Part shown: positions 1 through 52,853 of the stretch, one piece after another
Numbering within the stretch: the first letter of the stretch is position 1
How the letters are laid out: the number at the start of each line of letters is the position of its first letter
NCBI GenBank assembly: GCA_004431415.1
Contig: QPMI01000126.1
Span: 1-64,000, forward strand
Direction: 5' to 3'
Length of the DNA: 64,000 nt
Source: Cyanophora paradoxa CCMP329
Lineage: Eukaryota; Plantae; Glaucophyta
Notes under the pieces: model-generated
What the model saw: only the letters and a program-made list of their open reading frames with translations
Database searches by the model: none
What the model was told of the DNA's origin: nothing
Position numbers and translations under genes: made by a program

Positions 1-3000
1 CCGGAGCGGTGCGCTTGGATCAGGGTCCTCCGTGACCGATCTCGCCGTCTCACGCCCCAAGCAGATCACGCGGACGCGAGCGGCGGCGGCGCGGCTGCTG
101 GCGGCGGGCGGGGCGGAGGAGGGCGGGGCGGGGCACGCGCTGCGGCGGGGTCGGCCGCGGGGTCTCGCCCCGAGGTCCGCGCCGCCCTCGCGGACGAGAG
201 CGGCTCCGAGGAGGCCAGCGACGCCGCGCAGTCGGTGCCCCGCCCGCCCGGGGCCCCCGCCTGCTCTCCGGGAGGGGATCGGGCGCGCGGCAGGGGCCGG
301 AGGGCGGGACGGAGAGCAGCGAGGCCGACGAGGCAGAGTTCCGCCGCTGCCGCGCCCCCCGCCGCGCCCCCGCCGCGCCCCCGCCCCGCCGGCGGCCGCC
401 GGCGGCGCCACTCGCCCCCGATGCCGGCCCCGGAGGCGCGCCGCCGCGCCGCGGCCCTCCTCGCGGTCGCCTCTCGCCGACGGGAGCGGCGCCGGCGCAG
501 GCGGAGCCGTGGGACGGGAAGGAGCTCGACTGGACCCGCCGCGAGCTCGCCCCCGGGTGCGCCGGCCCCGCCGCAGCCCCGGCGGCGGCCGTGGGGCCGG
601 GGCGACGGGGCGGGGGCGCAGGGTCGGTGTGCACAGCGGGGTGGCGGGGCGGCTGCTGCCTGCCCCACCAGCTCGAGGCTGCCCGCTTCCTCTGGCGCCT
701 CTGCGTCACCGACGCCGACGCCCTCGCCGCCCGCTCCGCCCGCGGTCCGCCTCTGCGCCGGCCCCGGCCCCGCCTGCCCTGCCCCCCACCCGCCCGCCCG
801 CCCGCCGGCCGCGCTCGACGCGACGCGCAGTGCCCATCAGCGGCGGCGTGGTGGCGCACAACATGGTGCCCCAGCCGCGCCTCGCGCGCCGCCCGGCCCC
901 GACCGCCCCGCGCAGGGCCTCGGCAAGACGCTCTCAGCGCGCCCGCCCGCCCGCCCCGCCGCCCCCTCCGCCCCGCGGCGCCACTCACGCGGGTCGGGGC
1001 AGACGATCGCTTTCCTTCACACGCGGCACCTCCAGGCGGCCCCCGCTTCGCCTCGCCCCTGCTTCCTCATCGTGGCCCCCGTGAACACGCTGGAGAACTG
1101 GCAGGCGGAGCTGCGCCGCTGGATCCCCCCGAACGCGCACCCCATGCCCCTCGCCCCCGCCCTCGTCGGGAAAGAGTCCCCCGAGGAGGCGCGCCGGGCC
1201 CATCCCGTCGGCCCGGCACAGACCGGCCGGCCCCGCGTGACCCGGCCTCCCCTGCAGGTTGTCTCCCGCCTGGAGCGCTGGCGCCGCGAGGGCGGCTGCT
1301 TCGTCATCGGGTGCGTGGGGCCCGCCGCGCCCCTCGGCGCCCCCGGCCGGCCTCACCGCCCGCCGCAGGTATGAGCGCCTGCGGACCCTGCTCCTCACCA
1401 AGGAGCACTTCGCGATGGGTGCCCCGCGCCCCGCCCCGCCCCGCCCCGCCCCGCCCCACCCCCGCCCCGCCGCCCGTCGGGACCGGCGCCGACGCCGGCG
1501 CTGGGGGTGCAGTGAAGGAGGCGATGCGGCACCAGAAGAGCGGGCGGGGGACGACGCGGGCCAACGAGGAGGCCCTCGCCCGCTTCCTCGCCGGCGGCCT
1601 CGACCGCACCCCCGCCCAGTTCTACGCCGTCCGCCCCGCCCCGCCCCGCCTCCGCGAGGCGCGCCTGGGGGCGGGGCGCGAGCGAGCGGGCTGCCGGCGG
1701 GCGCGCAGATGGCGCGGGCGCGGTCGGAGCCGCAGGAGAACCGCCCCCTCGCCGCCGCCAAGCGCGCCATCCGCGACGACCCCCTCGCCAAGCGCGGCCA
1801 GGCCCGCCCCGCCCCGCCCGCCCCGCCTGCCCCGGCCGCCCTCGGCCGAGGCGGGGCGGCAGGGGGTGTACCAGCGGGCGCGGGCGGCGCTGTGCGACGG
1901 GGCCGGGCCGGGGGCGGGGCCCCTTCCCCTGCCCCTTCGACGTGCTCGTCCTCGACGAGGGCCACCGCATCAGGGCCCGCCCTCGCCCGCCCGCCCGCCC
2001 CCGAGCCGCCCCTGTGCGCGGAGCTGATCGTGGGCGGGGGCGTGGCAGTCGGAGGGGAGCCAGCAAACGGTGGCGATGGGCCTTCTCTCGGCCCGCCGGC
2101 GGGCCGTCCTCTCGGGGTACCCCCTCCAGAACAACCTCTGGGAGTACTACCACATGCGCGCCACTTCTGATGCCGTATCGCACGTTTCAAATCGAACTCA
2201 AAGCCGTACCCTTAACCTCCCCCACCTCCCCGCGGCCGCGCGCAGGCTGGACTACGTCCGCCCGGGGTGCCTCGGTGCGCCACGCCCCGCCCCGCCCCCT
2301 CCCCGCCCCCGCCCCCGCCCCCGCGGCGACGAGGCGGGGGCGGGGGCGGGGCAGGGACGCGGCGGGCCTTCTGGAACTCGTTCGTCTGGCCGATCGACCT
2401 GGGGACCTTCCGCGACTCGAGCGCCGAGGAGGTCCGCGCCATGTACAAGCGCCTCCACGTCCTCCGCCAGGTCCCCCGCTGGCCCCGCCTGCCCGCCCCG
2501 CCCCCGCCCGCCCGCCCACGCGCGGGGCGGGCAGCGGGTGGGCCCGTACGTGGACCGGCGGGACGCGCGCGTCCTCCGCCGCGCCATGGCAGACCTCAAC
2601 CGCGACCGCCAGGCCCGCCCCCGCCCCGACCCCGCCCCGCCCCGTCCCCTCCCCTCGCCTCACGCCCCGCGCAGAAGTTCGAGTTCGTGCTGCACGTCCG
2701 CCTCGACCCCGTCGCCGTGCTCCCTCCCGCCCTTCTCGTCCGCCGGGCGGGGCGGCTGAGGCGGGGCGGGGCGGGGCAGGCGGCGCTCTACGAGAGGCTC
2801 GTCGCCGCCGCCCTCGAAGGCCGCCTCGTGCCCCCGGCCAAGGGCCGCCAGGCGCCCCAGCGCGCCCCGCGGCAGCGGCAGCAGCAGCAGCAGCACTCGC
2901 ACTCGGATCCCGAGGCCACGGAGGTCGAGGGGAGGCCCCGCCCGCGCGCCGGGGCCCGGGCCCGGGCGGGAGCGGCGCGGGGGAGCGGGCGGTGCCGGGG

Positions 3001-5291
3001 GGCGTGCGGCGGCGGCTCCCTGTCCTCGTCGCCTACCAAGTCGCCCGCAAGGTCCCCGCCCCGCCCCGCCCCGCCCCGCCCCGCCCGCCTCGCCCTACCA
3101 ACCCCGACCCTCACGCCCGGCGCCGGCAGATCCTGAACACGCCCGAGGTGCTGCGCCGCTTCCTGCTCCGACTGGGCCCCGCCGCCGCCGGCCTCGCCGC
3201 CGACGGCGAGTCCGACCTCGTGCGTGCCCTCGCGCCGGTCGGCAGCAGCGCCCCGCGCCCCGCCGATGTCCACGCGGCAGGGGGCGGCCTCGGAGGAGGA
3301 AGAGGGGGAGGAGGGGGAGGGGCGGGCGACGCGGGTCGACTACGGCTCCTTCGTGGACCCGGCCTTCGCCGCCCGCGCCCCCTTCGCCCCCGCCGACTCC
3401 AACAAGGCCCGCCCCCGCCCCCCGCCCCCGCCCCCTGTCGCTCCCGAAAGGTGCGCGAGGCGGGCGGGGCAGATGGCTGTGGCGCTCGAGATCGCCCGCC
3501 TCGCCGCCCAGGCCGGCGACAAGGCGCCCGCTCCCGCCCCGCCCGTCCACTCTCTTCGAGCTCGCCGCGAGCGGCGGCCGCAGGTGCTGCTCTTCAGCAC
3601 GTCGCTGGGGACGCTCGACGTCTGCGAGGAGGCCGCCCGCTCCCTCCTCGGGTGCCCCCGCCCCGCCTCCCCGCCCCGCCCCGCCGGGGCGCCGAGGGTG
3701 GGGTCGGCGCGGGGGGCCAGGTACGAGTCGGGGCGGGAGCTCTTCCGCGTGGACGGGAGCACGCCCGCGCAGGCGCGGCACAGCCTCGTCCAGCGGTGCG
3801 CCCCGCTCGGCCCCATGGCCCCAAGCGAGCGCTAGCCGCCCCGGCCCGCCGCCCCGCCTCTCTCTCGCCGCCTGCCCCGCACCCGAGCTCGCCCGTCTCG
3901 AGCGCGCGCGGGGGGGCAGGTTCAACAGGGACCCCGGGGCGCGCCTCTTCGTGATCTCGACGGTCGCCGGCGGCGTCGGCATCAACCTCGCCTCCGGTGC
4001 CTTCGCCCTCCCGCGCCCTCCCGCGCCCTCGGTTCGGCCTGGCCTGCCCGGGGGCCTCACGCGGCTTGTTCGGCCCCCCGCGCCCGCGCCCGCAGCGAAC
4101 CGCGTGATCGTGATGGACGCCTGCTGGAACCCCTGCCACGGCCCGCACCGACACCCCGCCCCCGAGCCGCCCCGCCCCCTCCCCCCTCTTCTCAGCGCAG
4201 CGCGCAGACACGCAGGCGCTCTTCCGGGCGTACCGCTTCGGGCAGCAGAAGGACGTCTTCGTCTACCGCCTCGTCGCGGCGGGGACGATGGAGTGGCGCG
4301 TCTACACCCAGCAGGCGCCCGCCCTCCGCGCCCCCGCCCCCCGTCCCCGCCGGGGGCCCATCTGCGCCCTCGCGCGCCCGCTCGGCCCCCGCAGGTCGTC
4401 AAGCAGTCCCTCTTCAAGCGCGGTGCGCCGGCCCCGCAAGCTCAAGCCGGTCCGGCCCCCGCTTCGCCCCGACGTTCTCGCGCGCGCGTTGGGCGGCAGC
4501 GGTGGACTCGGCGGCGACCTCGCGGCACGTGGCGCGGCAGGAGGCGGGCGAGTACTTCGCGGTACCGCTCGAGTGGCGCCCCCCGGCCCGCTACGCGCGC
4601 TCCTCCGCCCGCGACCCCGTCCTCGCCGTGCGCCCCCGCCCCGCCCCGACCCCCCGCACACACGCGCGCGGCGCCCCGAGCGGCGCTTGCGTGCAGGCGG
4701 CGGTTGCGGAGTTTGCCGGCGGGCGGCGGCGGCGGCCGGCGAGCCCGGCGACGAGGACGATGACTCGGGGTCGGAGGCGGAGGCGGGGGCGGGCGGGACC
4801 CGCTGGCGGCGCTCGGCGTGCTCGCGCAGCCGCCGGCCCCGGGGCGGGGCGGGGGCGGGGCGGCTCCAGCGGGGGCGGGGGGCGGCAGCGGGGCGGGGCC
4901 CGCCGCCCCGGGGATGGTGCTCCTGCGCGTGCACGAGCACGAGTCGCTCCTCGCCGACGACGACCCGGGCGCCCGGTCCGCCCCGCCCCGCCCCGCCCCG
5001 CCCCGCCCCGCCGCGCGCCCTCCGAGCCGGCCGGGGGCGCGGGGCAGGATCACGGAGGAGGACCGGCGGGAGGCGGCGGGGGAGGTGGAGCGGGAGGAGC
5101 GGGCGGAGCGGGCAGCGCGGGTGCGGGAGCGCGCCACGCGCCGCCGCGCCGGCGTCTTCTTCGACGAGGAGGACGAGGAGGACGAAGAGGGGCCGCGCCC
5201 CGAGCAGGGCCCCCGCCCCGGCCCCTCCCCCGCCCCTCTGCAGGCCCCAGCAGCCGCCGCCGCGGTGTCCCTCGATGCCATGATGCCATGA
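1..5291 (+). CDS. SNF2-family helicase/ATPase, ATRX/ARIP4(RAD54L2)-like; multi-exon, 5' end probably outside window
   Basis: Spliced exons give [19 protein letters not shown]|GLGKTL (motif I), [29 protein letters not shown] (DExH), [20 protein letters not shown]|[55 protein letters not shown]|[22 protein letters not shown] and HEHESLL, all typical of the ATRX/ARIP4 clade. Stop position is approximate. Confidence 0.88.
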
Positions 5292-5459
5292 TGTACTATA
5301 GCTAGTACTTTTCTGACTCAGTGACTCAAGCTCAGACCGATGTACTACGGTACAGCGCCGCGCGCCGCGGGGCCCGGCCCGGCGCGCGGGGCCGTGGCGG
5401 GCCATGCAGACCCACCCCGGCCCATGGCCAATTGCAAGCCCTGCGGCCGTACTAGTGCG

Positions 5460-8400
5460 TGCTAAAGTTTCGCGAGCTATCTGTATTAGCAAGCCATCAT
5501 AATAACGTTGATTAAGCTGAGTGTGCAAGACCATGGTCACGCTCCCAGACTAATTTGCCAAGTAGATGCGAATTAGAAGCCTACAACTGCAAGCGGTCTG
5601 CGGCTGCCCCACTGGGCGGCGGTTGCGAGGAATGGGCTCGACAGCGCCTCGGGCCCGGGGCCCGGGGCCCCGCAGAAGATGAGGAGGGACGGGCCCGAGG
5701 CGCGGGGCTGGGCGGCCCAGAGCATAGGCCCGCCGGGGCACCAGCGCCGGGGCCCGCACGCCTAGGCCTGCCGCCAGCAGGCGCGCCCGGCCTGGCCTCC
5801 GCTGCTGCGCCTGGATCGGCCCGGGGGACGGCCTGGCCATGGGGCGGAGAAGAGGGAGGCAGGCCGCGGGCACACCGGCGCCACCGCGAGAGCCCGCCCG
5901 CCGCCGCCTGGCTCCCCTTCGCCGACCCCGACCGCACCTCCCGCAGGACGACCCGGCAACCTCGAGCAATGGCGGACGCTGCTGCGCTCGTACGACGTCG
6001 ACTCGGGCCGGGGCGGGCGCACGCACGGAGCGCGCAAGCGGGGCACCTCGCTTCGGGCTTCCAAAAGTGCGGCGTTCTTTCCGCGCGCCGAAGCCTGCGT
6101 CCGGGAAGACGTCAGCTGCGAGCGCAAACGCGCTGCACCAGCGTGGCGCAGCCACTGCCGTCAGTGCATACCGGCCGCAAGGGGTAGCGCCGGGACGCCA
6201 GCTCGCAGCTGCAGGGAGCCTCGCATGCGCAGCTGGACTCGGGCAGCCCGCAAACGCATCCGCTTCTATGATCATGAAGCCTTGAAGGAGAGAAGACGAA
6301 GGGCGAGCTGCAGATTCTGCCATCGTCGATCCGCGCTGATTTGTCCGCTAGCCTCGACGGCAGCTACTGCTAGCTGACCATGCCAAGCTCTTCAGTTCTA
6401 GACAGAGAATTTGAAGCGCTGCGACCTGTGCGCGTTAGAAGCTTCAGCCCGAGAAAGGAGCGCTCACAGGCTGAATTGAAGCATGCACTTCGCACCGTCA
6501 CGGGACTCTCTCGCCTGTCTCCCTCCGCGGCCGACATCAGCAGGCGCGGCAGGCCTAGGTTCGCTGCTGCTGAAAGCCGCTGCTAAATTTCAAAGCCCCC
6601 GGCCGCTCTGTACGTACGTGCTGTCGCCGCGCTTTTGAATTCGATGCCTAGACGTTCTCCGCGCCATATGCATCGCTCGTGGAGCAGGTGGTGTGAACGT
6701 GGGCGGCGGTGGGCCTCGCCGAGTCGGCTCTCGATCGGTGGCTCGTGCACGAGCCACCCCTTTGACCCCCCCTCCTCCTTCCCCCCCGAGCGGCCTGTGC
6801 ACAGGCCGCTCGGATTAGACTGTACCCCCCACTGGCTCGTGCACGAGCCAGCTCTTTGCCCCCCCCCATCCCGCCCCCCCCCCGCCCCCCTAGTGGCCTG
6901 TGCACAGGCCACTCGGATGGCACTGTACCCCCTTACAAAAAAACAGATTGGCCGGTGCAGCGGCCAATCCGTCTAAAAAAAGGCTGGTGGGCTCATGCTC
7001 GACTCCACAGAGGGCTATATATATTAGGGACGCCGCCGCGACCTTGTTTACAGCATGCACACGAGCGACGGGTGCGTCTGGCTTCTCTCCCCTTCCCCGG
7101 CAGGAGTTTCGCGGGCCCGCTGCTGCCGGGCGGGTGAGCTTTCGTAACAGATCGTGCATTGCGACGGGCATCATCACTGATGCGACACTGGCGGCATGCA
7201 TATGCCATGATGATCAGGCCCTCGGCCCTGGGACGAGTGTCAGCACCGCGGCCGCGCGCGGCAAGCGCGGCTCTATATCTGCGTCCCCCGCGCCGCGAGC
7301 TCCTCGATCGGCAGCGCGCCACTCGAGGTCGTCAGTAGCTTGGAAGCCGCTGCGGCAGCTTCAGCGTCGACAGGTCCATGACCAGGCCGCCGTGATCGTT
7401 CTGGTCCACTTCGACGTGCGCGCGCGCGCCGCGCGCGGCGCTTGCCCGGGCGCACACTCGGCAAGAAGCGGGTGCGTTCCAGATCTAGAGGAGCATGTGT
7501 ACAAGCACCCGCTGAAGAGAAGTTGACGCCGCTCGCAGCGGCTCGGCCCCGGAGCCTTCATGTGTTGTCCGCCCCGGCCCGCCCTCGCGCGATCGGCGCT
7601 TCTCAGCCGCCGGTGGTTCCCGGGCCCCGAGGCCCGCTGCTGGTTGAGCGGGCCCCGAGGGACAGGGATGTCTTCGTCGAGGTCGTCGGCGGCGGAGGCG
7701 ACGGAAGCGGCAGCTGCTCGGGAGGCGGCGGCCGCGGAGGCCTAGCTATAGGCGGCTCTGGGAGGCGGCGGCGTCGACGGCCGCAGAGGGCGCCAGCCGG
7801 GGCGGGGCGTGCCGGCGCGGACGGCGGCCGCCGCCGCGGCGCCACCCGACGACCACCTGCCCCGGCGCGGACCGCCGCCTCCTCCGTCCCGCCAGTGCCG
7901 TCTTCTCGTCTGCAAACGCTAGCGGACTCGGGCCGGCGCCTCCCGTCGGCCCGCGGCCGGGCCCCACCCGTTCGGCGATCGGCGGCTGAGGCGACGCGGA
8001 GAGCGACCCCACAGCATATATGCATCCTGCTTGCCAAGTTGGCCGGCGCCCGCCCTCGAGCTCGCCCAGCGGAGCAGGCGCCCTTGGCGCCGGCCCTAGG
8101 CCTAGACTTTTTCTCGAATTCCCAAGCCTTGAAGTTCGCAATTTAAAGCTAGCCATATCTATCGTGTTAACCTTGACTGAGCTGAGTGTGCAAGACCATG
8201 GCCACGCTCCCAGACTGCAGACGTACGCGTGCGGGGACAGGGGCCTCGACCAGCTGCAGCTGCAGATCACGATCGCGAGGCCGCGGAAGTACTAGTGTTG
8301 ATTGCTCATCGCTAAGTAAATGCGAATTAGAAGCCGACAACTGCAAGCGGTCTGCGGCTGCCCCACTGGGCGGCGGTTGCGAGGAATGGCTCGACAGCGC

Positions 8401-11400
8401 CTCGGGCCCGGGGCCCGGGGCCCCGCAGGAGATGAGGAGGGACGGGCCCGAGGCGCCGGCGCGGGGCTGGGCGGCCCAGAGCATAGGCCCGCCGGGGCAG
8501 CAGCGCCGGGGCCCGCACGCCTAGGCCTGCCGCCAGCAGGCGCGCCCGGCCTGGCCTCCGCCGCTGCGCCTGGATCGGCCTGGGGGACGGCCTGGCCATG
8601 GGCCGGAGAAGAGGGAGGCAGGTCGCGGGCACACCGGCGCCACCGCGAGAGCCCGCCCGCCGCCGCCTTGCTCCCCTTCGCCGACCCCGACCGCACCTCC
8701 CGCAGGACGACCCGGCAACCTCGAGCAATGGCGGACGCTGCTGCGCTCGCACGACGTCGACACGGGCCGGGGCGGGCGCACGCACGGAGCGCGCAAGCGG
8801 GGCACCTCGCTTCGGGCTTCCAAAAGTGCGGCGTTCTTTCCGCGCGCCGAAGCCTGCGTCCGGGCGGACGTCAGCTGCGAGCGCAAACGCGCTGCACCAG
8901 CGTGGCGCACGCAGCCACTGCCGTCAGTGCATACCGGCCGCAAGGGGTAGCGCCGGGACGCCAGCTCGCAGCTGCAGGGAGCCTCGCATGCGCAGCTGGA
9001 CTCGGGCAGCCCGCAAACGCATCCGCGTCTATGATCATGAAGCCTTGAAGGAGAGAAGACGAAGGGCGAGCTGCAGATTCTGCCATCGTCGATCCACGCT
9101 GATTTGTCCGCTAGCCTCGATAGCAGCTACTGCTAGGCTGACCATGCCAAGCTCTTCAGTTCTAGACAGAGAATTTGAAGCGCTGCGACCTGTGCGCGTT
9201 AGAAGCTTCAGCCCGAGAAAGGAGCGCTCACAGGCTGAAGCATGCACTTCGCACCGTCACGGGACTCTCTCGCCTGTCTCCCTCCGCGGCCGACATCAGC
9301 AGGCGCGGCAGGCCTAGGTTCGCTGCTGCTGAAAGCCGCTGCTAAATTTCAAAGCCCCCGGCCGCTCTGTACGTACGTGCTGTCGCCGCGCTTTTGAATT
9401 CGATGCCTAGACGTTCTCCGCGCCATATGCATCGCTCGTGGAGCAGGTGGTGTGAACGTGGGCGGCGGTGGGCCTCGCCGAGTCGGCTCTCGATCGGTGG
9501 CTCGTGCACGAGCCACCCCTTTGACCCCCCCTCCTCCTTCCCCCCCGAGCGGCCTGTGCACAGGCCGCTCGGATTAGACTGTACCCCCCACTGGCTCGTG
9601 CACGAGCCAGCTCTTTGCCCCCCCCCATCCCGCCCCCCCCCCCGCCCCCCTAGTGGCCTGTGCACAGGCCACTCGGATGGCACTGTACCCCCTTGCAAAA
9701 AAACAGATTGGCCGGTGCAACGGCCAATCCGTCTAAAAAAAGGCTGGTGGGCTCATGCTCGACTCCACAGAGGGCTATATATATTAGGGACGCCGCCGCG
9801 ACCTTGTTTACAGCATGCACACGAGCGACGGGTGCGTCTGGCTTCTCTCCCCTTCCCCGGCAGGAGTTTCGCGGGCCCGCTGCTGCCGGGCGGGTGAGCT
9901 TTCGTAACAGATCGTGCATTGCGACGGGCATCATCACTGATGCGACACTGGCGGCATGCATATGCCATGATGATCAGGCCCTCGGCCCTGGGACGAGTGT
10001 CAGCACCGCGGCCGCGCGCGGCAAGCGCGGCTCTATATCTGCGTCCCCCGCGCCGCGAGCTCCTCGATCGGCAGCGCGCCACTCGAGGTCGTCAGTAGCT
10101 TGGAAGCCGCTGCGGCAGCTTCAGCGTCGACAGGTCCATGACCAGGCCGCCGTGATCGTTCTGGTCCACTTCGACGTGCGCGCGCGCGCCGCGCGCGGCG
10201 CTTGCCCGGGCGCACACTCGGCAAGAAGCGGGTGCGTTCCAGATCTAGAGGAGCATGTGTACAAGCACCCGCTGAAGAGAAGTTGACGCCGCTCGCAGCG
10301 GCTCGGCCCCGGAGCCTTCATGTGTTGTCCGCCCCGGCCCGCCCTCGCGCGATCGGCGCTTCTCAGCCGCCGGTGGTTCCCGGGCCCGAGGCCCGCTGCT
10401 GGTTGAGCGGGGCCCCGAGGGACAGGGATGTCTTCGTCGAGGTCGTCGGCGGCGGAGGCGACGGAAGCGGCAGCTGCTCGGGAGGCGGCGGCCGCGGAGG
10501 CCTAGCTATAGGCGGCTCTGGGAGGCGGCGGCGTCGACGGCCGCAGAGGGCGCCAGCCGGGGCGGGGCGTGCCGGCGCGGACGGCGGCCGCCGCCGCGGC
10601 GCCACCCGACGACCACCTGCCCCGGCGCGGACCGCCGCCTCCTCCGTCCCGCCAGTGCCGTCTTCTCGTCTGCAAACGCTAGCGGACTCGGGCCGGCGCC
10701 TCCCGTCGGCCCCGCGGCCGGGCCCCACCCGTTCGGCGATCGGCGGCTGAGGCGACGCGGAGAGCGACCCCACAGCATATATGCATCCTGCTTGCCAAGT
10801 TGGCCGGCGCCCGCCCTCGAGCTCGCCCAGCGGAGCAGGCGCCCTTGGCGCCGGCCCTAGGCCTAGACTTTTTCTCGAATTCCCAAGCCTTGAAGTTCGC
10901 AATTTAAAGCTAGCCATATCTATCGTGTTAACCTTGACTGAGCTGAGTGTGCAAGACCATGGCCACGCTCCCAGACTGCAGACGTACGCGTGCGGGGACA
11001 GGGGCCTCGACCAGCTGCAGCTGCAGATCACGATCGCGAGGCCGCGGAAGTACTAGTGTTGATTGCTCATCGCTAAGTAAATGCGAATTAGAAGCCGACA
11101 ACTGCAAGCGGTCTGCGGCTGCCCCACTGGGCGGCGGTTGCGAGGAATGGGCTCGACAGCGCCTCGGGCCCGGGGCCCGGGGCCCCGCAGGAGATGAGGA
11201 GGGACGGGCCCGAGGCGCCGGCGCGGGGCTGGGCGGCCCAGAGCATAGGCCCGCCGGGGCAGCAGCGCCGGGGCCCGCACGCCTAGGCCTGCCGCCAGCA
11301 GGCGCGCCCGGCCTGGCCTCCGCCGCTGCGCCTGGATCGGCCTGGGGGACGGCCTGGCCATGGGCCGGAGAAGAGGGAGGCAGGTCGCGGGCACACCGGC

Positions 11401-18678: not shown

Positions 18679-18960
18679 TCAGCGGCTGCCACACTGGGCC
18701 GCCGGGCGGCGGTTGCGATGAATGGGCTCGACAGCCCGCAGCCGGCGCGGCCCCTGGCCATGGGGCCCGGGGCCCCGCAGGAGGGACGGGCCCGAAATAA
18801 AATTGCTCTGATAGGTCCGGCCAGGCAGGAAGGTAGTTGCCCCCCTAGGCCTCTCCACGCGCCGCTGTTTCCAGCGACTCGGCCGGGCCATGAGGAGGGA
18901 CGGGCCCGATCACGAGGCGCAAGGCTGGGCGGGGCTGGGCGGCCACAGCGGACTGGCCTT
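18679..18960. repeat. Degenerate older fragment of the macrosatellite unit
   Basis: GCGGCTGCC..ACTGGGC, GGCGGCGGTTGCGA.GAATGGGCTCGACAGC, GGGCCCGGGGCCCCGCAG and GAGGAGGGACGGGCCCGA match unit sequence at about 5600-5720, interrupted by insertions. Confidence 0.75.
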
Positions 18961-33853: not shown

Positions 33854-34062
33854 CTCTGCGTATCCCGGGCGACCTAACTAACGCTCGCCTGGGGAGCTGG
33901 CCGGCGAAGCTAGGCACGGCGCTGGAGCGCTGGTTCTGGAAAGCTACAACAACGAGCCTAAACATCCGCGGGCCCCGAAGGCCCGCGGCGCGGCTGGATG
34001 ACGAGGCTGCCCGATTGGCCAACCTTCTGTACCCGTGTTGTTCTCGTTCCCCCCTTGCAAAA

Positions 34063-36433: not shown

Positions 36434-36674
36434 GCCTCGGAGGCCCCTTATGCCTGCACGAGAGCAACGAAACAAATCCCTGACATCGACCACTCCGGTC
36501 GGACCCAGCACATGGACCCTGCCCCCCTTTCCCGCGCTCCAGCGTGGTTTCAAGTTTCTGACTGTTTCTGATCCAAGGACATAGATCACCGCTAGCGAAA
36601 GATGACGGGGGTTAAGCACGGAGCGGGCCGAATGGTGCGCTGGGGCGCGTGTTTGGCGAACGGAAGCATGCCGC

Positions 36675-37606: not shown

Positions 37607-37721
37607 GGTTGCGACTTGTCCTAGATCAAGTGTGCCGTACCCCCGCGCTCCCCTCGACGATACCCCCCTCACTTTCGAATTTTTCGGCGCGAAGAGCAGA
37701 GCGCCGCGGCGACGAAGTAGA

Positions 37722-43223: not shown

Positions 43224-43342
43224 CCCGCCCCGCCCCGCGCATCCCTCCGGTTCGGGCGTTCAATCGCAGAGAGCGAGAGGGCGGGGGTCAGCGGGGCGCC
43301 GGGGCTGGCGGGGCGGGGGGCCGGTAGAGGACGGAGCCCGGG

Positions 43343-45307
43343 ACGGACGTGGGCGTGCACGGTGGGGGCCACGTGCAAGCGCAAAATTTGGCCGTTAACA
43401 GCAGAGCAAGTTAGGCCGTTACTGTGTCGACTTGGAGCTGCTCGGTGGCCAAACCAGGGGCCAGATGTTAGGAGACAGCGCCTTGATCACGAAACGAGAA
43501 AAGCCGGGGAGGCTTGCCTACAGGTTGGAAGGGCAAGCAGGGCGCCGCATGCAAAGACCAGTCAGGGAACACATGCTCGGGCGGTCAAGAAAACAGCTCG
43601 CACCAGGGTCTGATCGATGCCCTCCTTCTTGCCCTTCTCCAGGCCCTTCTCCAGGCCCTCCTTTAGGGACTCCGCCATTGCCTTCTCGAGCTGCGGCGCG
43701 GCGTAAAACACTCGCCGCTCAGGTGGTACCGCTGAACGCAGAACAACAACAACGCACATCGGCTCGAGTGTACAGGCGGCCACTCGCAGCGGTGTCCCGT
43801 CTGCTGCGCAAGACGACGCGCGGTGTACCGGTCACATTGGGGGGCGCTAAATATTCGAGCGCGCGCCCTGCACGAACCCTGACGGGTCTTCGTTATCCGC
43901 TCGTCGACTCTTTGACATTGAAATGCATATGCCGACAGCTGCTCGGCGACGACCAAATTCTCGCAGCTTCCTGCGCGAGAGGTCATGTGCCAGGGTCGCC
44001 GTCAGCAGCGGGCAAGAAAAACGTTGAGCTCACCGCTCAGGCGGGAAAAACTCGACTGGCGGGACTCCGGTCATGAAGGCGAGCCGCTTCGACTTCGGAT
44101 TCGCCCCAGGCCGCGTGTGTGGTGCGTGATGCTCGAGGAATTTCGCAGCAAACATTGAGAAAATCTGAAGTCGCGTAGGGTGAACGGTCGGCTGTTGCTG
44201 TGGGGTCTTGGTAAACAACACCAGCGCCTGAGGCAACGAGGCAACACGGCTAAGTGAGGGTATTGCATTTGCTGATTCAGTCAACCCGTCGGGTAAGTTT
44301 GTGCAACAGGAGTCGGCCTTGGGGAAAGGAGAGGCCCTTAGGTCTGTGCCTATCTTGTGTCAAACTTCAACTTGATTTTATAGACAAAATTTTTGGACCT
44401 AGGTACCCATTTTCGACCCTAGGGAGCACGATGGCGGCGCTACTTTTCAAATGTGACACCTCTAACAAGCACTAACAGCACGTACGAACGAAATTGTTCG
44501 CGTTAAGCCCGAACGCCATTGGCCAAAAAGCTCAATCGCCCCATTCACGGACAAGCGCAAATGTCATTGGCTCCCCTTCGCCAATGCAAATTCTCACAGA
44601 CTCATAAACAGAGCTGGTGCGCCTGTCATTGTCAGTATACGTAATTGGTGAGCAGTAGTTGGCAGATCAATTAGGCGCTCGCAATTGAAAGAATTGTTGG
44701 CAATCGTTTGGCCAACGTTTGGCCGATCACAACATCAATGATTGAATCACCAAAAAACTCTGTTCGTGTGAATTTCAATCGCGATCGACGATCGATCAAC
44801 GTCGACGTGAAGACGGCCGATTGGGCCCCGCATCGATATCTGTACCCTTGCAGCACAATTCTGTACCCTCTCACTTGAGTGTGTACCCTTGCCAAGTGGA
44901 CCCCCCTATTTCTCCTCCCCCCTCCCCCGTAACCGCGCGCGGTTGCGCATGCGCATGCGGGCCTTGTTATAAAACAAAGAGCGGCCACCCTCACGCCTTG
45001 AGACCCCAAGACCCAAGGCCACTCCTGCTCCGCAGGGACTCGCTTGTTCAGAGAACTTCAGACAGATATCGAAGAAAGTGCATGCTCTGCACCGGCCGTC
45101 TTGGTCGATCGATGCCATGATGAGCGGGCCATCCGCAAGGATATCGATTTCGATTGGGTTAACGTTGCCAGCAAGTTGCCACAGCTGCCCCGAGCCACGA
45201 ACAGTTGATCGATGTCGTGAGGCGCGATTGTTGGGCGAGCCGGCGCCACTCCAGCTGACAACGACGGCGGCTAAGGCAGCGCACTCTCGCTCTCACGGTG
45301 CGTCTGT
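43343..45307. other. ~1.97 kb lower-GC insert between the two copies of the MSH6 duplication
   Basis: Abrupt drop in GC and loss of CCCCG repeats exactly between the end of duplicate 1 (43342) and the start of duplicate 2 (45308). Confidence 0.8.
43419..44155 (-). CDS. Small spliced orphan gene with an EGLEKG repeat
   Basis: Clear minus-strand introns (e.g. 44033-43971 GTGAG..GCAG). Exon 43690-43604 reads LEKAMAESLKEGLEKGLEKGKKEGIDQTL and the last exon ASLPGFSRFVIKALSPNIWPLVWPPSSSKSTQ*. Upstream phases and start are uncertain. Confidence 0.5.
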
Positions 45308-48300
45308 CGCAGCGGTACATCGCCTCGCAGCGCGGGGCGCCCGTCGGCGACGACCGCGCCCGCGTCCGCCCGCCCGCCCGCCCCGCCCGCGCAGCGCTCG
45401 TGCAGGCGCCCGACGCCGGCCGGCAGGTCTCGATCGCGGCGGGGCGGGCGGCGAAGTTCGAGGCGGCGAACCAGGAGCGCTACTCGTGGCTCGCCGACGA
45501 GCGGGACGCGCAGGGGCGGCGCCCCGGCGAGGAGGGCTACGACGCCAGCACGCTGCGCGTCCCCGCCGACAAGTTCGCCAAGCTCTCCGACTTCGAGAAG
45601 CAGTACTGGACGCGCGCCCCGCCCGCCCCACCGCCGCCGCCGCGGCCTCACGCGCCGGCGGCAGCATCAAGAAGGACAACTGGGACAAGGTCGTCTTCTT
45701 CGTGCGCGGCCGCCCGCCCCGCCCCCGCGCCCCGGCCCCGCGCCCCGCGCCCGCTCACGCACGCCCTCCGCCCCGCAGAAAAAGGGCAAGTTCTACGGTG
45801 CGGGGGCCGGGGCGGGCGTCGGCGCCTGCTGCGCGCCGAGCGCGGGGGCGCAGAGCTTGTACGAGAAGGACGCGGACGTGGGCCACCGGGAGCTCGACTT
45901 GAAGCTGACGGACCGGGTGAACATGCGGATGTGCGGGGTGCCGGAGAGCACCTTCGAGATGTGGGCCGCCAAGCTCGTCGCCCGCGGCTACAAGGTCGTC
46001 CGCGTCGAGCAGATGGAGCGCCTCCGCGACGCCGACCGCCGCCGCGCCCAGGCCCGGCCCCCGGCTCCCGCCCCCGCCCCGCTCCCGCCGGCTGAGGCGG
46101 GGCGGGGGCAGGGCGGCGGGAAGGAGACGAAGGTGTGCCAGCGGGAGGTGTGCGGGGTGCTGACGGCGGGGACGCTGGTGGAGGAGGCGATGATCGCCTC
46201 GCCCGAGGCCGTCTATCTCCTCGCCCTCCGCGAGGCCCAGCCCGAGGGCCCCGCCGCGGGGCGGCGCTTCGGGGTCTGCGTGGTGGACGCGGCGCGGGGC
46301 GAGTTCGCGGTGGGCTCCTTCGAGGACGACGCGGCGCTCTCGGCGCTGGAGACGCTGCTGCTGCAGCTGCAGCCGCGCGAGCTCGTCTACGAGCGCGCCA
46401 ACCTCTCCCCGGAGGCCCGCCGCATGCTCCGGCGCCTGCCCCGGGCCGTCGCCTCGGAGACGCCCCCCGCCAAGGCCCCCGCCGCCTGGTGCCCCGAGGC
46501 CGCGCGCGACCGCCTCCGCACCGGCGGCTACTTCGCCGACCCCGGCGCCACCGCCGACGGTGCGCCAGCCCACCGGCCCCGCGCCCGGCCCGGGGGCGAG
46601 GCGGGGCGGGGGCTGCAGAGGCGGAGTGGCCGGAGGCGCTGCGGGAGGCGATGGGGGAGCCGCTGGCGGGGGCGGCCTTCGCGGGATGCCTCTCGTACCT
46701 GCGCGAGGTCCTCCGCGACGAGGCCCTCGTCTCCGCCCGCCGCTTCCGCCCCTACGACCCCCGCGGCGAGGCCGCCGCCGCCCGCCACCTCGTCCTCGAC
46801 GGCAAGGTCCGCCCCGCCACCGCCCCGCCGCCCCGCCGCGCCTTGGGGCGGGCCTCAGGGGCGGCGGGGCAGGCGCTGGCGAACCTGGAGGTGCTGGAGG
46901 GCGGGGCCTCCCCCGCCGTCGCCGTTGGCGCCGCCCTCGACGCGGGGACGGCGCGCCGCGCGGCGGGGTCCCTGCTGGCGCTGCTGGACCGCACGGCGAC
47001 GCCCTTCGGGGGCCGCCTGCTGCGCGCGTGGCTGTGCGCGCCGCTGCGGCGGAGGGAGGAGATCGAGGACCGCCTCGACGCCGTCGAGGACTTGCACGCC
47101 CTCGCCCCGCGCCACGGTGCGGCCGCCCCCCCGCCCTGCCGCCCGCCCCCGCCCGCGCTCACGCCGACTGCACAGGCGAGCTGCGGGCCCTCCTCAAGTC
47201 CCTCCCCGACCTGGAGCGCGGCATCGCGCGCGCCCACGCCGGCGCCCGCCGCTCCACCTACGGCGTCGTGCGCCCCGGCGCCGGCCCCCGCCCCGCCGCG
47301 CCCCGCCGGCCTGAGGGGGCGGCAGATGTTCGACAACAGCGAGGTGAAGCGCCTGTGGGCCTTCCTCGACCTCCTCGCCGCCCTCCGCAAGGCCCTCGTC
47401 CGCCCCCGCCGCCCCGCCCCGCCCGCCCCGCCCCGCGGGGCCGAGCGGGGCGGGGCGGCGCAGGATGTGCCGGCGCTGCTGGCGAAGGAGGCGGCCGGCT
47501 TCAAGTCTCGCCGCCTGCGCGCCCTCGCCACCCTCGGCGACGCCTTCCCCGACCTCGCCCCGCTGTCCGCGCCCCGCCCGCCCGCCCGCCCCGCCCCGCC
47601 GCCCCGGGGCCGACGGCGGGGGGCCGTGGCAGGCTGGAGGAGGTGGCGCGGGGCTTCGACGTGCAGGGGGCGCGCAAGGAGGGCTCCCCCGGCCTCGTCC
47701 CCGAGGCGGGGAGGGTGCCCGAGTACGAGGCGGCGGCGGCCGAGGTGGCGGCCCTCGAGGGGCGCCTCGAGGAGATCCTGCGCGACGCGCGCCGCCGCCT
47801 CAAGTGCCCCGCCCTCGCCTTCCGCACCATCGGCGAGGAGGAGTACCTGCTCGAGGTCCCCGCGCAGGCCGCCGGCGACCTCCCCAGGTCCTGGTCCGAG
47901 GCCTCCTCCACCAAGGCCCGCAACCCGCCCCGCCCCGCCCCGCCCCGCCCGCCCCGTCTCACGCGCGCGGGGCGCAGGCAGTGAAGCGGTACGAGGCGGC
48001 GGAGGTGAAGGCGCTGCTGGGGCCCCTCGCCGAGGCCCGCGACCGGCGCGAGGCGGCGCAGGCGGACCTCCTGCGCCTCCTCATGGGCCGCTTCAGCGCC
48101 CACTGCGAGGCCTGGCGCGCCGCGGTCGCCGCCCTCGCCGAGATCGACTGCCTGCTCGCCCTCTCCCTCGCCTCGTTCGGGCTGGAGGGGCCGATGTGCC
48201 GGCCGCGGCTGGTGGAGGGCGGCCAGGGGGGCCCCGTGCTGCGCCTCAAGGGCAGCCGGCACCCGTGCGTGGTGCCCCCCGCGGGGCAGCCCTTCATCCC

Positions 48301-49359
48301 CAACGACATCGCCCTCGGCGGCGACGGCGCCCCGCCCGTCGCCCTCGTCACGGGGCCCAACATGGGCGGCAAGGCCCGCCGCCCCCCCGCGCTGCCCCGC
48401 GGGGCGGGGCTGACGTGGCGGGGCGCAGTCGACGCTGCTGCGGCAGGCGTGCGTGGCGGTGGTCATGGCGCAGGTCGGCTGCTTCGTCCCCGCGGAGGAG
48501 TGCCTCCTCTCCCCCGTCGACCGCCTCTTCACGCGCATCGGCGCCGCCGACCGCATCCTCGCCGGCGAGTCCACCTTCGCCGTCGAGCTCCACGAGGCCC
48601 GCCCCGCCCGCCCCGCCCGCCCCGCCCCGGGCGAGGCGGCGGGGCGCAGACGGCGGGGGTGCTGCGGCACGCGACGCAGGACAGCCTGGTGATCCTCGAC
48701 GAGCTGGGGCGGGGCACGTTGACCTTCGACGGCGTCTCCATCGCCCACGCCGTCCTCCACACCCTCGCCGCCTCCACCCGCTGCCGCACCCTCTTCTCCA
48801 CCCACTACCACATGCTCACCGACTGGTCGGTTTCGGCCCGCCCCTTCGCCGCCCGCCCCGCCCCCGTGCGAGGGGCGCGCAGGGTCTCGGCCCCGGGCTC
48901 CGAGGGGGCCGTCGGCCTCTACCACATGCAGAGCCTCGTCGAAGACTCGCAGTGCGCGGCGCCCTCGCCCCGCCCCGCCCCGCCCCGCCCCGCCCCGCAA
49001 GGGCCTGAGCCGCCGGCGGGGCAGGCGGCGGGTGACGTTCCTGTACAAGTTCGCGGCGGGGGTGTGCCCGCGCTCGTACGGCCTCAACGTGGCGGCCCTC
49101 GCGCGCCTGCCCGAGGCCGTCTTGGCCCGCGCCGCCGCCCTCGGCGCCTCCTTCGAGAGCGAGACCTTCGAGCGCCGCAAGCGGTGCCGCCCCGCCCCGC
49201 CGCCCCGCCCCCGGGCCCGCGCCGGCCCGGTCTGAAGCCGCGGGACGGCAGGGCGCGGGAGGCGGCGCTGGACGAGGGCCTCGAGCGCTGCAAGCGCGCC
49301 CTCCGCGCCGCCGCCGCCGGCGACGCCCCCGCCCTCCGCGCCGCCCTCGCCCGCCCTGA
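45308..49359 (+). pseudogene. MSH6: Second MSH6 copy lacking the N-terminal region (truncated paralogue or pseudogene)
   Basis: 45308-49480 duplicates 39162-43342 including introns. Substitutions include LRAF>LWAF, RTMGK>RTIGE, HGEAW>HCEAW and ECVL>ECLL. All core MutS motifs are retained and no nonsense codon was seen. Confidence 0.85.
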
Positions 49360-49426
49360 CCCGCCCCGCCCCGCCCATCCCTCCGGTTCGGGCGTGCAAT
49401 CGCAGCAGAGAGCGAGAGGGCGGGGG

Positions 49427-51601
49427 TCAGCGGGGCGCCGGGGCTGGCGGGGCGGGGGGCGGTAGAGGACGGAGCCCGGGGCGGGCGGGGGCGCGGGGCG
49501 GCCGGCGAAGAAGGGGTGGGCGAGGGCCTGGGCCGCCGTGATGCGCCGCGCGGGGTCCAACGCCAGCATCCGCTGCACCAGCTGCCCGCCGCCCGCCCCG
49601 CGCCTCGGCCAGGGCCCGGCCGGCCAGGGCGGGGCGCGGGGCGGACCTGGTTGACGCCCGGGAGTAGCGGCCCGGGGCGAGGGCGGGGCGGCGGGCCCGT
49701 GGGGCACGGAGGGGAAGGGCTCGGCGGGCCCGCCCTGCGGGTTGTACGGGCGGAAGACCTCCGCCAGCGAGATCGGCGCCACCGCCTGCCGCCCCGCCCC
49801 GCCTGAGGCGCACCGCCGGGGAGCGGGGCGGGCGGGGCGGGGCGGGCCTGGAGGGAGGGGGCGACGGGGAGGTCGAGCCAGGGGACGTCCTCGCGGCGCG
49901 GGAAGCCGAGCACCTGCCGCCCGCCCTCGCGCGGGGCCCGCCGCCCGCAGCGCCGCGCAGGGCCGGCGCGCACGGCGGTCATCTTGAAGAGCTGGTCCGC
50001 CGCGTCCCGCCCTGCCCCGCCCACGCCGCAGCGTCAGCCCGGCTGGCGCCCGGGGGCGCGAGGGGCGGGGCGGGGCGGGGCGGGCGGGGCACCAGGGAAG
50101 AGCGGGTGGCGGAGGATGAGCTCCGCGAAGACGCAGCCGAGGGACCACATGTCCTGGCGAGTGGCCCCCGTGAGGCCGGAAAGGCGCCGGCGGGGCGGGG
50201 CCGGGCCGGGCCGGGGGGCGCACGACGGCCGGCCCGTACTCCTTCGCCCCGAACATCAGCTCCGGCGCCCTGCGCCCGCCCCGTCGGCGGGGCCAAGCGG
50301 GGCGGCGGGGCGGGCCGGGCCGGTAGAAGCGGGAGCCGATGTAGGGGACGTTGACCCCCGCCGGGTCCTCCGCCCCCTTCGCACACCCGAAGTCCGCCAG
50401 GCACGCCCGCTCCGTCCTGCCGCCCCCGGCCCCGCGCGCTCCAGGCCGTCCCGCACCGCCGGCGCCCCGAAGCCGGAGGCGCACGTCGGGTCGATGAGGA
50501 TGTTGGCCGGCTGCGCGGCGGGGTCGGCAGGAGGCGGGCGGTGCAGGCGCGGGGGCGGGGCGGGGCGGGCGGGCGGGCCTTGATGTCGCGGTGGACGATG
50601 CCGCGCGAGTGAATGAAGGCCGTCGCCTCGAGCAGCTGCCGCATGATCCGCTTCACCACCGTCAGCGGGATGTGCTCCCGCCGGTCCACGTAGTCTGCGC
50701 CCCGCGCCCTCACCCCCGCTCTCGCACCCGCCCCCGCCCCGCCCCCCTGCCGCCCGCGGCGCACGCAGGGCTAGGAGCTGGCGGGGGGAGGGGGCACGGG
50801 GGGCGCGCCTTGGATGAAGGATTCCATGTCGAGGGGGATGAACTCGAAGACGAAGTTCTGCGCATGTGCGCGCGGGCCGGGCGGGGCTCAGTCGGGGGCG
50901 GGGCGAGCGGGCGGGGCGGGGGCGGGGCGGGCCTGCATGATGGAGCGGTCGCCGTCGGCGACGGTGTAGAAGGCGTCCAGCAGCTGGATCACGTTCGGGT
51001 GCCCCGCCACCCGCCCCAGCACCTTCATCTCCCGGCTCGCCAGCTCGCCCCACTTCTGCTCAGCGTACAGAGCGCCGTACGCCATAATTAGCTCGCGTCT
51101 AGACGCTATCGAGCCATCTGCAGGCCTACGCCCGCCCGCGCTGCGCGAGAGCGCACCGGGACGCGCTTGAGGGCGACCTTTCTGCCATTCTCATCGTAAG
51201 CCTGAAAGCGCGAGAAATGCGTGAGTGACGCAAAAGCTCCATCGACGAGAGGCGCCAGCTAGCAGCAAGCAGCGCGTGTGGAACCGGAGCGAACGCGGAG
51301 AGAACAAGGATAAATGCGCGGCCGCAGCTGCGCAGTGCGGAAGGAACGAGAAACGCGCGTACCTCGAACACCGACCCAAAGGTGCTGCGAAAGGAGCATG
51401 AGCGAGCCGCGCGCAGCAGCAAAATGAGGACGCGGCGAGCTGGCGCGCGCACCCGCTTCCCAGCAGCTTGGTGATGCGATAATTGCTCGGGGCGCGCGCT
51501 GCTAGCGACCCGAGATCGCAGGGCGCCGCGGTCGGCCGCTGGATGCCGTCCTTCGTTCGCATCGAGAGAATTAGCTCGGGTACCCCGTTAGCGGCTTGCA
51601 T
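49427..51601 (-). CDS. CMGC Ser/Thr kinase, GSK3/shaggy-like (divergent)
   Basis: [58 protein letters not shown]|[26 protein letters not shown]|[27 protein letters not shown]|G..DQL and [13 protein letters not shown]. Start and stop are approximate. Confidence 0.85.
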
Positions 51602-51806
51602 TGCCTTGCAATGCCTTGCATTGCTGTCCTGCAACTCTAGACGTAGCAGGCAGCAGGCGCCAGTTCGAGTTCGAGCCGGCGTAGCAGGCAGCAGGCATCA
51701 GGGCTCCCAACGTCCAGAGAGCGGCCGCGCTCGCGCGCACCTCGACGCCGGCGCCGAATCGTCGTCCTGCGGCAGCGCGCCGCTTTTCTAGAGCTCTTTG
51801 AGCGGG

Positions 51807-52853
51807 ATGAGCGCATCGGCGCGGGCGCGCCGCGCCGTCCTGGCGCGCGTGCTGTCGGCCGGCCGAATAGCTAGCTTGCGGGCGGCCGCAGCGAGGCCTG
51901 CAGCGGCCTCCTTGCGGCTACAGCTCAGAGCGGTGCATTCGGCGAGCGTGCAGGGACAAGCGCACGAGCGGGCAGCTTCGAGCGCACCGCGCGCATGCAC
52001 AGAGGCGGAGGCCGCGGGCGACGACCTGCGGAAGCTTATGCGGCGCGTACCAGCTCCGATAGCGATTGTCACGGCCGCCAACTCGCGCGGGGACATGCGA
52101 GGTGCGCCCTGCTCGAGCTGAGCGGGAGCCGGTAGCGCTAGGGCGGCCGCGGCTGACGTGACGGGCCCAGGGATCATCGCGTCGAGCTTCCAGAGCGTGT
52201 CGCTGCACCCGCCGCTGGTCACCTTCAACCTCATGGCCCACAACAGGTTCGCCGCCCGCTGCCCGCCGGCCGCGGCCCGCGGCGGCGGCTGATGCCGGCG
52301 CGCGGCGGCAGCATGCACGCGTTCCTGGACGGGGGCGGCGCGGCGGGCTTCTCGGTGAGCCTCCTCGGGGAGGAGGCGCGCGAGGCTGCCGAGCGCTTCG
52401 CCAACTGGCGCGCCTTCGCCGCCTCCCTCGCCCCGGGGGATCCCGCCGCCGCTGCCCGCCACCCCGGCACGGCGGCGCAGCTGCGGGGCCTGCCGCACCG
52501 GATCGAGGCGCTGACGGGGGCCCCGGTGCTGACCTCCGGGGTGCTGGGAGCGGTGCACTGCCGGACGCACTCGATCATCCCCGTCGGCGATCACGTCCTC
52601 GTCGTCGGGTGCCCGCCCCCGCCCCGCCACCCCCGCCCCGCCCTGACCGCCCGGCCGGCCTGGCAGGGCCGTGTTGCGGGCGGAAGTGCCGCAGGGGGCC
52701 GTATCGGCCCCCTGCAGTCCCCTCGTGTGGTGCGGCGGCTCCTACCGCCACCTCGGCGCCCGCCTCGCGATCGGCGAGCGGCGGGCCCAGCCGGCACCGG
52801 CCGCACCCGCAGCAGCCACCCCCCCACCCGGCGACGTCGCTGGTAGCTGCTAG
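51807..52853 (+). CDS. Flavin reductase-like FMN-binding protein with a probable organelle-targeting presequence
   Basis: LRKLMRRVPAPIAIVTA, G|IIASSFQSVSLHPPLVTFNL, FSVSLLGEE...AERFA, GAPVL, GDHVLVVG|RV and PLVWCGGSYR. Arg/Ala-rich N-terminus; one apparent frameshift in the last exon. Confidence 0.88.

Follow-up and report, generated by a model that had tools for sequence, protein, structure and literature searches.

Splice-site grammar of short introns in a GC-rich region of the glaucophyte Cyanophora paradoxa

How are introns recognized when their donors hardly contain A, no pyrimidine tract precedes their acceptors and many of them begin with GC instead of GT? This question is raised by a stretch of 64,000 nucleotides (nt) from Cyanophora paradoxa CCMP329 (contig QPMI01000126.1, positions 1 to 64,000; here called the window), in which the GC content ranges from 58% to 82%. 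In the 2019 assembly of this species G+C amounts to 67.6%, there are 9.2 introns per gene, and introns average 86 bp (PMC6704402). A first-pass annotation of the window, made from the letters alone, had described an unusual intron grammar and offered three possible bases for it: pairing between a C-rich and a G-rich intron arm, a poly(C)- or G-run-binding factor, or variant U1/U6 small nuclear RNAs (snRNAs). In this paper we looked at the introns of an ATRX-like helicase gene and of a tandem pair of MSH6 genes. The reading that we favor, with a probability of about 0.6, is that they are ordinary short U2-type introns, recognized across the intron, whose splice signals have drifted toward G and C and are accompanied by C-rich and G-rich context zones. 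The genes are:

250-5283 (start approximate), plus strand: ATRX-subfamily SNF2 helicase gene (ATRX-like gene); spliced alignment to the paralog P0121, score 1710
37722-43220, plus strand: MSH6 copy 1, EukProt tig00000489_g1375.t1 (P0001); word search with the MSH6 read-through open reading frame (ORF), exact mapping
45277-49230, plus strand: MSH6 copy 2, EukProt tig00000489_g1377.t1 (P0002); paralog, intron set shared with copy 1

Splice signals of the homology-fixed introns

The intron set (n = 39) comprises 23 introns of the ATRX-like gene and 16 of MSH6 copy 1, all fixed by protein homology. For MSH6, an exact spliced mapper placed P0001 and P0002 on the two tandem copies, and the introns were validated by alignment with 11 MSH6 homologs, which left 16 in copy 1. 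The ATRX-like gene was compared with P0121, a Cyanophora paralog and the only relative that could be retrieved; for P0121 in turn, the best match among solved proteins is human ATRX (E 1.5e-76). A protein-to-genome spliced alignment to P0121 was followed by enumeration of all junction placements within 30 nt. At 20 junctions the GY-AG solution that was chosen scores at least 8 BLOSUM units higher than its closest GY-AG competitor (the margin in the list below), and three more were included at moderate support. The alignment of P0121 with human ATRX is contiguous over most of these junctions, and individual exons give SNF2 Pfam matches. Six further junctions (443-486, 1189-1257, 1671-1708, 2884-2972, 3220-3298 and 4691-4743) were discarded because the spliced aligner is unreliable in the low-complexity N- and C-terminal parts. 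In all 39 introns there is exactly one GY-AG solution among the equal-scoring placements, and the termini are all GT-AG or GC-AG.

An ab initio codon-usage parser trained on MSH6 was rejected, as it recovered only 8 of the 16 true MSH6 introns. It exchanged many GT donors for false GC donors lying within a few bases, so GC-AG counts made by hand or ab initio can be inflated, and no ab initio junctions were used.

The donors follow the consensus G[T/C][G/C]C[G/C]C. GTGCGC (9), GCCCGC (7), GTCCGC (5) and GCGCGC (4), the hexamers that the first-pass annotation had named as prevailing, make up 25 of the 39, and the rest are their relatives. Position +4, described there as almost always C, is C in 38 introns (P = 6e-6 against the local 68% C). 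At +3, where A had been called rare, there are 23 G, 16 C and neither A nor T; +5 is G in 30 and +6 is C in 33. GC-AG introns, put at a quarter to a third by hand count, reach 36% (14/39; 95% confidence interval 21-53%), with 9/23 in the ATRX-like gene and 5/16 in MSH6. The junctions that had been singled out as examples, namely GLGKTLS at 937, YYH-AT at 2156, the MSH6 P-loop GGK/STLL at 42234 and 1802-1862, are all real. Exon AG precedes 9 of the 14 GC donors versus 3 of the 25 GT donors (p = 0.0013), and this classical compensation suggests ordinary exon-side pairing with U1. No U12-type [A/G]TATCC donor occurs among the 39.

The introns are 50-124 nt long (median 66) and consist of 53% C, 35% G and only 5% A. 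At least two CCC runs lie in +7..+36 of 37 introns, in agreement with the C-run reported to follow the donor; tandem CCCCG-type pentamers are found in 23, and the first intron third past +6 is 68% C and 73% pyrimidine. Toward the acceptor, G makes up 56% of the 12 nt that precede the terminal AG, against 38% C and 3% T. In 16 introns the last 25 nt hold two or more G-runs, and 14 introns have no G-run at all, and hence the earlier statement that a G-rich arm is often present holds, whereas the symmetry of C-arm and G-arm was overstated. The acceptor reads GCAG in 37 cases (G at -4 in 37, C at -3 in 39). A motif search places the relaxed motif C[T/C][G/C]A[C/G], the predicted branch motif, in every intron, as had been proposed. 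By an unbiased rule, which takes the A closest to the acceptor at a distance of 9 nt or more, this A lies at -12..-23 in 33 introns, and A is enriched 2-3 fold at -15..-24. The bases between the predicted branch A and the 3' splice site are 59% G, 35% C and 5% T (40% pyrimidine); the absence of a pyrimidine tract in this interval thus stands.

Against the background of local base composition, information amounts to about 6 bits at the donor and to about 9.6 bits at the acceptor, where the rare A supplies most of it. The donor hexamer consensus matches 32 real sites and 208 decoys (6.5 decoys per real site) on the sense strand of the two genes, and many of the decoys fall within C-runs. A motif-only scan of both strands gave 176 plus-strand and 72 minus-strand grammar matches, versus about 37 and 36 in shuffles. 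The predicted minus-strand acceptors are concentrated at 20.3-21.2, 29.9-33.2 and 49.6-50.5 kb, and isolated ones occur in other places. In an all-against-all blastn comparison the introns share no complex repeat family, only CCCCG-type repeats whose shared segments have at most 3% A+T.

The tandem MSH6 copies (39162-43355 versus 45308-49493, 97.4% identity) allow a comparison of rates. Intron bodies diverge at 4.6% of sites versus 1.35% in exons, i.e., 3.4 times faster, and among 160 donor and acceptor signal positions there is a single change, a G>C at +3 that stays inside the consensus. C-runs differ in length between the copies by exactly 10 nt (41766-41837 versus 47916-47977) and 5 nt (42812-42889 versus 48952-49024); the run of CCCCG pentamers acts like a microsatellite that slips.

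ATRX-like introns (minimum free energy, MFE, and folding z where of interest):
557-621, plus strand: GT-AG, 65 nt; margin 29
866-915, plus strand: GT-AG, 50 nt; margin 28, contiguous in human ATRX
937-1002, plus strand: GC-AG, 66 nt, GLGKTLS/GCGCGC; margin 14, contiguous in human ATRX
1311-1368, plus strand: GT-AG, 58 nt; margin 12
1419-1512, plus strand: GT-AG, 94 nt, long (CCCCG)n run (Tandem Repeats Finder, TRF, 1427-1471); margin 16
1802-1862, plus strand: GC-AG, 61 nt; margin 11
1975-2048, plus strand: GC-AG, 74 nt; margin 8
2156-2245, plus strand: GC-AG, 90 nt, YYH-AT/GCGCGC, AT-richer body; margin 18
2275-2354, plus strand: GT-AG, 80 nt, strong C-arm/G-arm hairpin, z -2.9; junction enumeration, folding
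2471-2534, plus strand: GT-AG, 64 nt; RNA-confirmed (X1 record 1, X5 record 17), margin 18
2613-2674, plus strand: GC-AG, 62 nt, no G-arm, MFE -3.2; margin 14
2717-2779, plus strand: GT-AG, 63 nt, strong hairpin, z -2.9; junction enumeration, folding
3052-3129, plus strand: GT-AG, 78 nt, no G-arm; margin 12
3407-3472, plus strand: GC-AG, 66 nt; margin 17
3524-3583, plus strand: GC-AG, 60 nt; near tie, favored by human ATRX 'GDKVL' over 3512-3571 (also GC-AG)
3652-3720, plus strand: GT-AG, 69 nt; margin 17
3796-3919, plus strand: GT-AG, 124 nt; margin 8
3997-4095, plus strand: GT-AG, 99 nt; margin 20
4141-4207, plus strand: GC-AG, 67 nt, MFE -8.8; margin 14
4315-4394, plus strand: GC-AG, 80 nt; margin 12
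4423-4499, plus strand: GT-AG, 77 nt; margin 17
4628-4696, plus strand: GT-AG, 69 nt, moderate support; by eye and tblastn, paralog DPVL/AVVDTFAG
4976-5047, plus strand: GT-AG, 72 nt, moderate support; tblastn match, frame kept across

MSH6 introns (from the mapped MSH6 model unless stated otherwise):
38032-38086, plus strand: GT-AG, 55 nt, annotation only
39067-39121, plus strand: GT-AG, 55 nt, annotation only
39218-39280, plus strand: GT-AG, 63 nt
39466-39518, plus strand: GC-AG, 53 nt; both MSH6 models
39556-39632, plus strand: GT-AG, 77 nt
39652-39707, plus strand: GT-AG, 56 nt; retained in P0002, homolog occupancy 0
39905-39964, plus strand: GC-AG, 60 nt
40412-40469, plus strand: GT-AG, 58 nt; homolog occupancy 0.11
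40658-40723, plus strand: GT-AG, 66 nt, hairpin z -2.3; mapping, homolog alignment, folding
40967-41026, plus strand: GT-AG, 60 nt, no G-arm
41119-41177, plus strand: GT-AG, 59 nt
41250-41315, plus strand: GT-AG, 66 nt, strongest hairpin, z -5.0; mapping, homolog alignment, folding
41416-41482, plus strand: GT-AG, 67 nt; mapping, homolog alignment
41766-41837, plus strand: GC-AG, 72 nt, 10 nt shorter in copy 2; mapped model, paralog comparison
42234-42288, plus strand: GC-AG, 55 nt, interrupts the P-loop GGK/STLL; mapped model, homologs
42457-42509, plus strand: GC-AG, 53 nt, hairpin z -3.5; mapped model, folding
42686-42742, plus strand: GT-AG, 57 nt
42812-42889, plus strand: GT-AG, 78 nt, 5 nt shorter in copy 2; mapped model, paralog comparison

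The GC-AG intron 2156-2245 has an unusually AT-rich and unstructured body (MFE -19 for 90 nt) without the usual C-run, and therefore the C-run is not strictly required.

Exon polarity and the pairing of intron arms

The C-rich and G-rich zones do not end at the splice sites. C excess begins about 40 nt upstream of the donor and G excess persists about 40 nt past the acceptor. The last exon third is more C-skewed than the first in 26 of 30 internal exons (p = 4e-5), in a test where a few ATRX-like "exons" may contain an unresolved intron. At third codon positions the first 30 nt of exons hold 134 C and 207 G and the last 30 nt hold 273 C and 90 G (Fisher p = 2.5e-22), while codon positions 1 and 2 show no C/G difference between exon ends (p = 0.21). 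The polarity is found at third positions only, and so at synonymous sites. At the grammar-predicted minus-strand sites the C-then-G polarity follows the orientation of the transcript.

Each intron was folded and compared with 200 dinucleotide shuffles of itself. The mean z is -0.61 and the median -0.30; z is above 0 in 18 of the 39 and below -2 in five, so the expectation that these introns fold better than shuffled controls is barely borne out. Such a small gain from arrangement can be explained by composition, since any sequence of 53% C and 35% G folds strongly. The duplex between an intron's own 5' and 3' arms has -23.65 kcal/mol versus -23.39 with the arms of other introns (p = 0.75-0.99), and C-richness of the 5' arm does not co-vary with G-richness of the 3' arm (rho 0.16). 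Pairing of the arms as the general definer of splice sites, the first of the three earlier options, is not supported by these results, but it may act as a helper in a subset of introns. In the hairpin introns the predicted branch motif lies partly within the stem. The branch A is unpaired in 32 of the 39 folds, and this was given no weight as support because A has almost no U partner.

Possible explanations of the grammar

In the reading that we favor, extreme GC richness would have moved nearly every A/U-bearing position of the splice signals to G or C. What would be left of the donor is G+1, Y+2, S+3, a near-invariant C+4, G+5 and C+6, where C at +2 usually comes with exon-final AG; on the 3' side a CYSAS branch motif would remain, with its A about 12-23 nt upstream, together with a GCAG that would be the first AG past the branch A. 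Since the introns have only 5% A, most of the information would reside in these rare A's. The donor-side C-run may then be the GC-shifted counterpart, with C for U, of the 5'-side pyrimidine tract of fungi, not an obligatory hairpin arm. The C-rich donor zone and the G-rich acceptor zone, which reach about 45 nt into exons through synonymous codons, may serve as context signals for RNA-binding proteins and so offset the weak donor hexamer. Among the three earlier options a factor that reads these zones fits best and is viable: the zones do straddle the splice sites and reach synonymous exon sites, and the reader proteins are what we infer from them. The zones may also originate from a mutation bias that is locked to splice sites.

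Similar features are found in several known systems. According to the citation of Kupfer et al. 2004 in PMC5677156, short fungal introns carry their pyrimidine tract mostly 5' of the branch site. By that account, short introns, a branch site near the acceptor and a pyrimidine-rich 5' side (73% in Cyanophora) are common to both, whereas the fungal tracts are U-rich with GTAAGT donors and the Cyanophora tract is almost pure C with the donor GYSCGC. In human introns, C-rich and G-rich intronic splicing enhancers offset weak pyrimidine tracts (Murray et al. 2008, PMC2481429), but such introns are a minority there, and their motifs are placed upstream of the tract. In Cyanophora the pattern concerns every intron, with C on the donor side and G on the acceptor side in a spatial order, and the zones enter the exons. 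GC donors reach 39.6% in Aureococcus anophagefferens, 22-26% in Micromonas pusilla CCMP1545 and about 50% in Emiliania huxleyi; the cause of their abundance in GC-rich algae was called an enigma, and U1 has a canonical 5' end in the cases checked (PMC3033335; PMC4815162). With 36% GC donors in a genome of 67.6% G+C, Cyanophora lies within the class defined by at least 20% GC donors above 64% G+C, and it shares with these algae high G+C, a large GC-donor share and weak donor information. It differs from Micromonas, in which most GC donors lie in repeated introner elements, as its introns share only CCCCG simple repeats, and as a glaucophyte it belongs to a lineage separate from those algae. The C at +4, the G-rich stretch before the acceptor and the C/G wave in exons were not found described in PMC3033335 or PMC4815162, and in the open literature we found no paper describing the splice grammar of Cyanophora.

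Several observations weigh against our reading. Canonical U1 would pair only with -1, +1, +2 (in GT donors only), +3 (by G wobble) and +5, and C+4 and C+6 are mismatches to canonical U1 and U6; C+4 in 38 of 39 introns and C+6 are then left unpaired, and some selector is needed to account for them. The mean folding z is slightly below zero (p = 0.02-0.05), a third of the introns fold into very stable hairpins from end to end (z to -5), and a minority, those at 2275, 2717, 40658, 41250 and 42457, are striking hairpins. Branch points are predicted from motif and position. None of the GC-AG junctions in the window was directly seen in RNA contigs, and they rest on protein homology. Frameshifts in both MSH6 copies and in the ATRX-like gene point to assembly errors or decay, and some of the introns may lie in pseudogenes.

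One alternative is that the two arms, C-rich on the 5' side and G-rich on the 3' side, pair with each other and thereby bring the donor close to branch and acceptor, a structure that would, maybe in a subset only, replace U2AF65 and the pyrimidine tract. It fits with the lack of a pyrimidine tract between branch A and acceptor, with clear G-runs opposite C-runs in 16 of the 39, with the near-perfect hairpins at 41250-41315 (z -5.0), 42457-42509 (z -3.5), 2275-2354 and 2717-2779 (both z -2.9) and with the shift of the mean z to -0.61 (p = 0.02). A precedent also exists in zebrafish, where structured introns of the (AC)m-(GT)n type are spliced independently of U2AF2 (Lin et al. 2016, PMC4691745) and, as in Cyanophora, complementary simple repeats stand at opposite intron ends next to a weak pyrimidine tract. 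Yet the zebrafish repeats co-occur and fold far better than shuffles, whereas in Cyanophora co-variation is absent, the mean z is -0.6 and a third of the introns have no 3' arm; the GGG...CCC arrangements also noted in human introns (PMC4691745) have the opposite polarity. An explanation by structure has further to deal with the 14 introns without a G-run, with nearly unstructured introns such as 2613-2674 (MFE -3.2) and 4141-4207 (MFE -8.8), with the 18 introns of z above 0, with own arms that pair no better than foreign ones, with branch motifs partly buried in the stems and with zones that run on into exons, where an intron hairpin does not need them. We consider it improbable. Another hypothesis moves the change into the snRNAs: positions 3 and 5 of the U1 5' end (canonical start AUACUUACCUG), the ACAGAGA of U6, or both, would be altered to pair with GYSCGC. 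The frequencies of C at +4 (38/39) and +6 (33/39), above the local C content (P = 6e-6) and mismatched to canonical U1/U6, speak for such a change. However, the two GC-rich algae in which this was examined have a canonical U1 5' end (PMC3033335), and GC donors lean on exon AG and keep G+5, the positions that canonical U1 reads, so that re-tuned snRNAs appear just as improbable as bridging by structure.

It is also conceivable that the pattern has no role in splicing at all, and that C-then-G polarity arises from biased mutation or repair that accompanies transcription or splicing, together with CCCCG slippage. The exon polarity is restricted to synonymous sites, the C-arms shift by 5- and 10-nt steps between the paralogs, intron bodies evolve fast, pentamer runs behave as microsatellites and a third of the introns do without the G-arm, and all of this is in line with a pure by-product. 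It would, however, need a mutational process that stays in phase with every single splice site to within about 45 nt, and we know of none. The donor hexamer is also too poor to work without context (~6 bits, 6.5 decoys per real site), and the polarity tracks the direction of transcription at grammar-predicted minus-strand sites too. An origin purely as a by-product is in our view unlikely, though less so than the two preceding explanations. A more far-reaching reading can also be formulated, in which C-rich zones mark donors and G-rich zones mark acceptors, in introns and at synonymous exon sites, as a neighbourhood code of the splice sites. This code would be read by dedicated poly(C)- or G-run-binding proteins or by altered U1/U6 and, together with C+4, would replace the route through a U-rich tract and U2AF65. 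We regard it as tentative and rather doubtful, a little ahead of the by-product in likelihood. Ordinary U2-type introns with drifted signals and context zones remain our preferred explanation.

The glaucophytes, whose genes are hard to annotate, form one of the three lineages with primary plastids. Gene models would improve with a correct grammar, in which about a third of the donors are GC, +4 is C, the acceptor is GCAG and the branch A stands about 17 nt before it. The case illustrates how far the signals at the 5' splice site, at the branch and in the tract can drift under GC pressure while splicing persists, and the splice-site-locked synonymous C/G polarity gives a testable handle on how a weak site is chosen among decoys.

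RNA evidence, gene models and neighbouring sequence

Four sequencing runs were compared with the window; X13 is collinear DNA and X1, X2 and X5 behave as RNA. RNA contigs skip four junctions that are present in X13, all GT-AG: 2471-2534 on the plus strand and 5982-6046, 6095-6171 and 6426-6495 in a minus-strand gene. Introns without support from RNA contigs are missing from the homologous proteins. Coverage of the weakly expressed ATRX-like gene by RNA contigs is poor, and most of the listed joints are low-complexity artefacts. One X1 contig loses collinearity at 2609, which fits the GC-AG intron 2613-2674 (with CAG shared) and is suggestive only, as the landing piece is unlisted; an X2 contig departs from the genome at 2717, where intron 2717-2779 begins.

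The ATRX-like gene needs several frameshifts to stay in register with P0121. They lie in G/C homopolymer runs (at about 663, 779, 1897 and 4730) and are likely residual long-read indels in very GC-rich DNA. The MSH6 copies differ by five 1-nt indels within coding exons (39710, 40392, 40858, 41398 and 42922). In the ATRX-like region a word search with the read-through ORF 1942-3951 gave no match, and neither did a large representative search with the 36-residue exon 4208-4315.

The published MSH6 models P0001 and P0002 disagree at seven introns. Alignment with the 11 homologs shows that five segments treated as coding are retained introns, with a homolog occupancy of 0-0.11; both models read through real introns in this way, namely 39652-39707, 40412-40469, 40658-40723, 41250-41315 and 41416-41482. 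Conversely, the "intron" 40819-40904 of g1375.t1 (P0001) was rejected as false, since it would delete a conserved MutS block found in all homologs. The final intron of g1375.t1, 42926-43114, is doubtful, and copy 2 is without the N-terminal ~460 residues.

Across the whole window an Rfam scan gave no RNA family and no snRNA gene. A tandem array occupies 5557-18678; its 2.76-kb unit is present in about 4.75 copies with 94-98.5% identity. Transcription is from the minus strand, and each unit contains three GT-AG introns, of which the RNA-confirmed set is:

5982-6046, minus strand: GT-AG intron, 65 nt, tandem-repeat gene
6095-6171, minus strand: GT-AG intron, 77 nt, tandem-repeat gene
6426-6495, minus strand: GT-AG intron, 70 nt, tandem-repeat gene

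All four sequencing runs share about 15 differences from the assembly in 5676-6372, and therefore the reads probably come from another unit of the array. Further downstream, a perfect (CCCCG)x10 lies at 21119-21169 on the plus strand, where the coding signal and predicted introns suggest a minus-strand gene.

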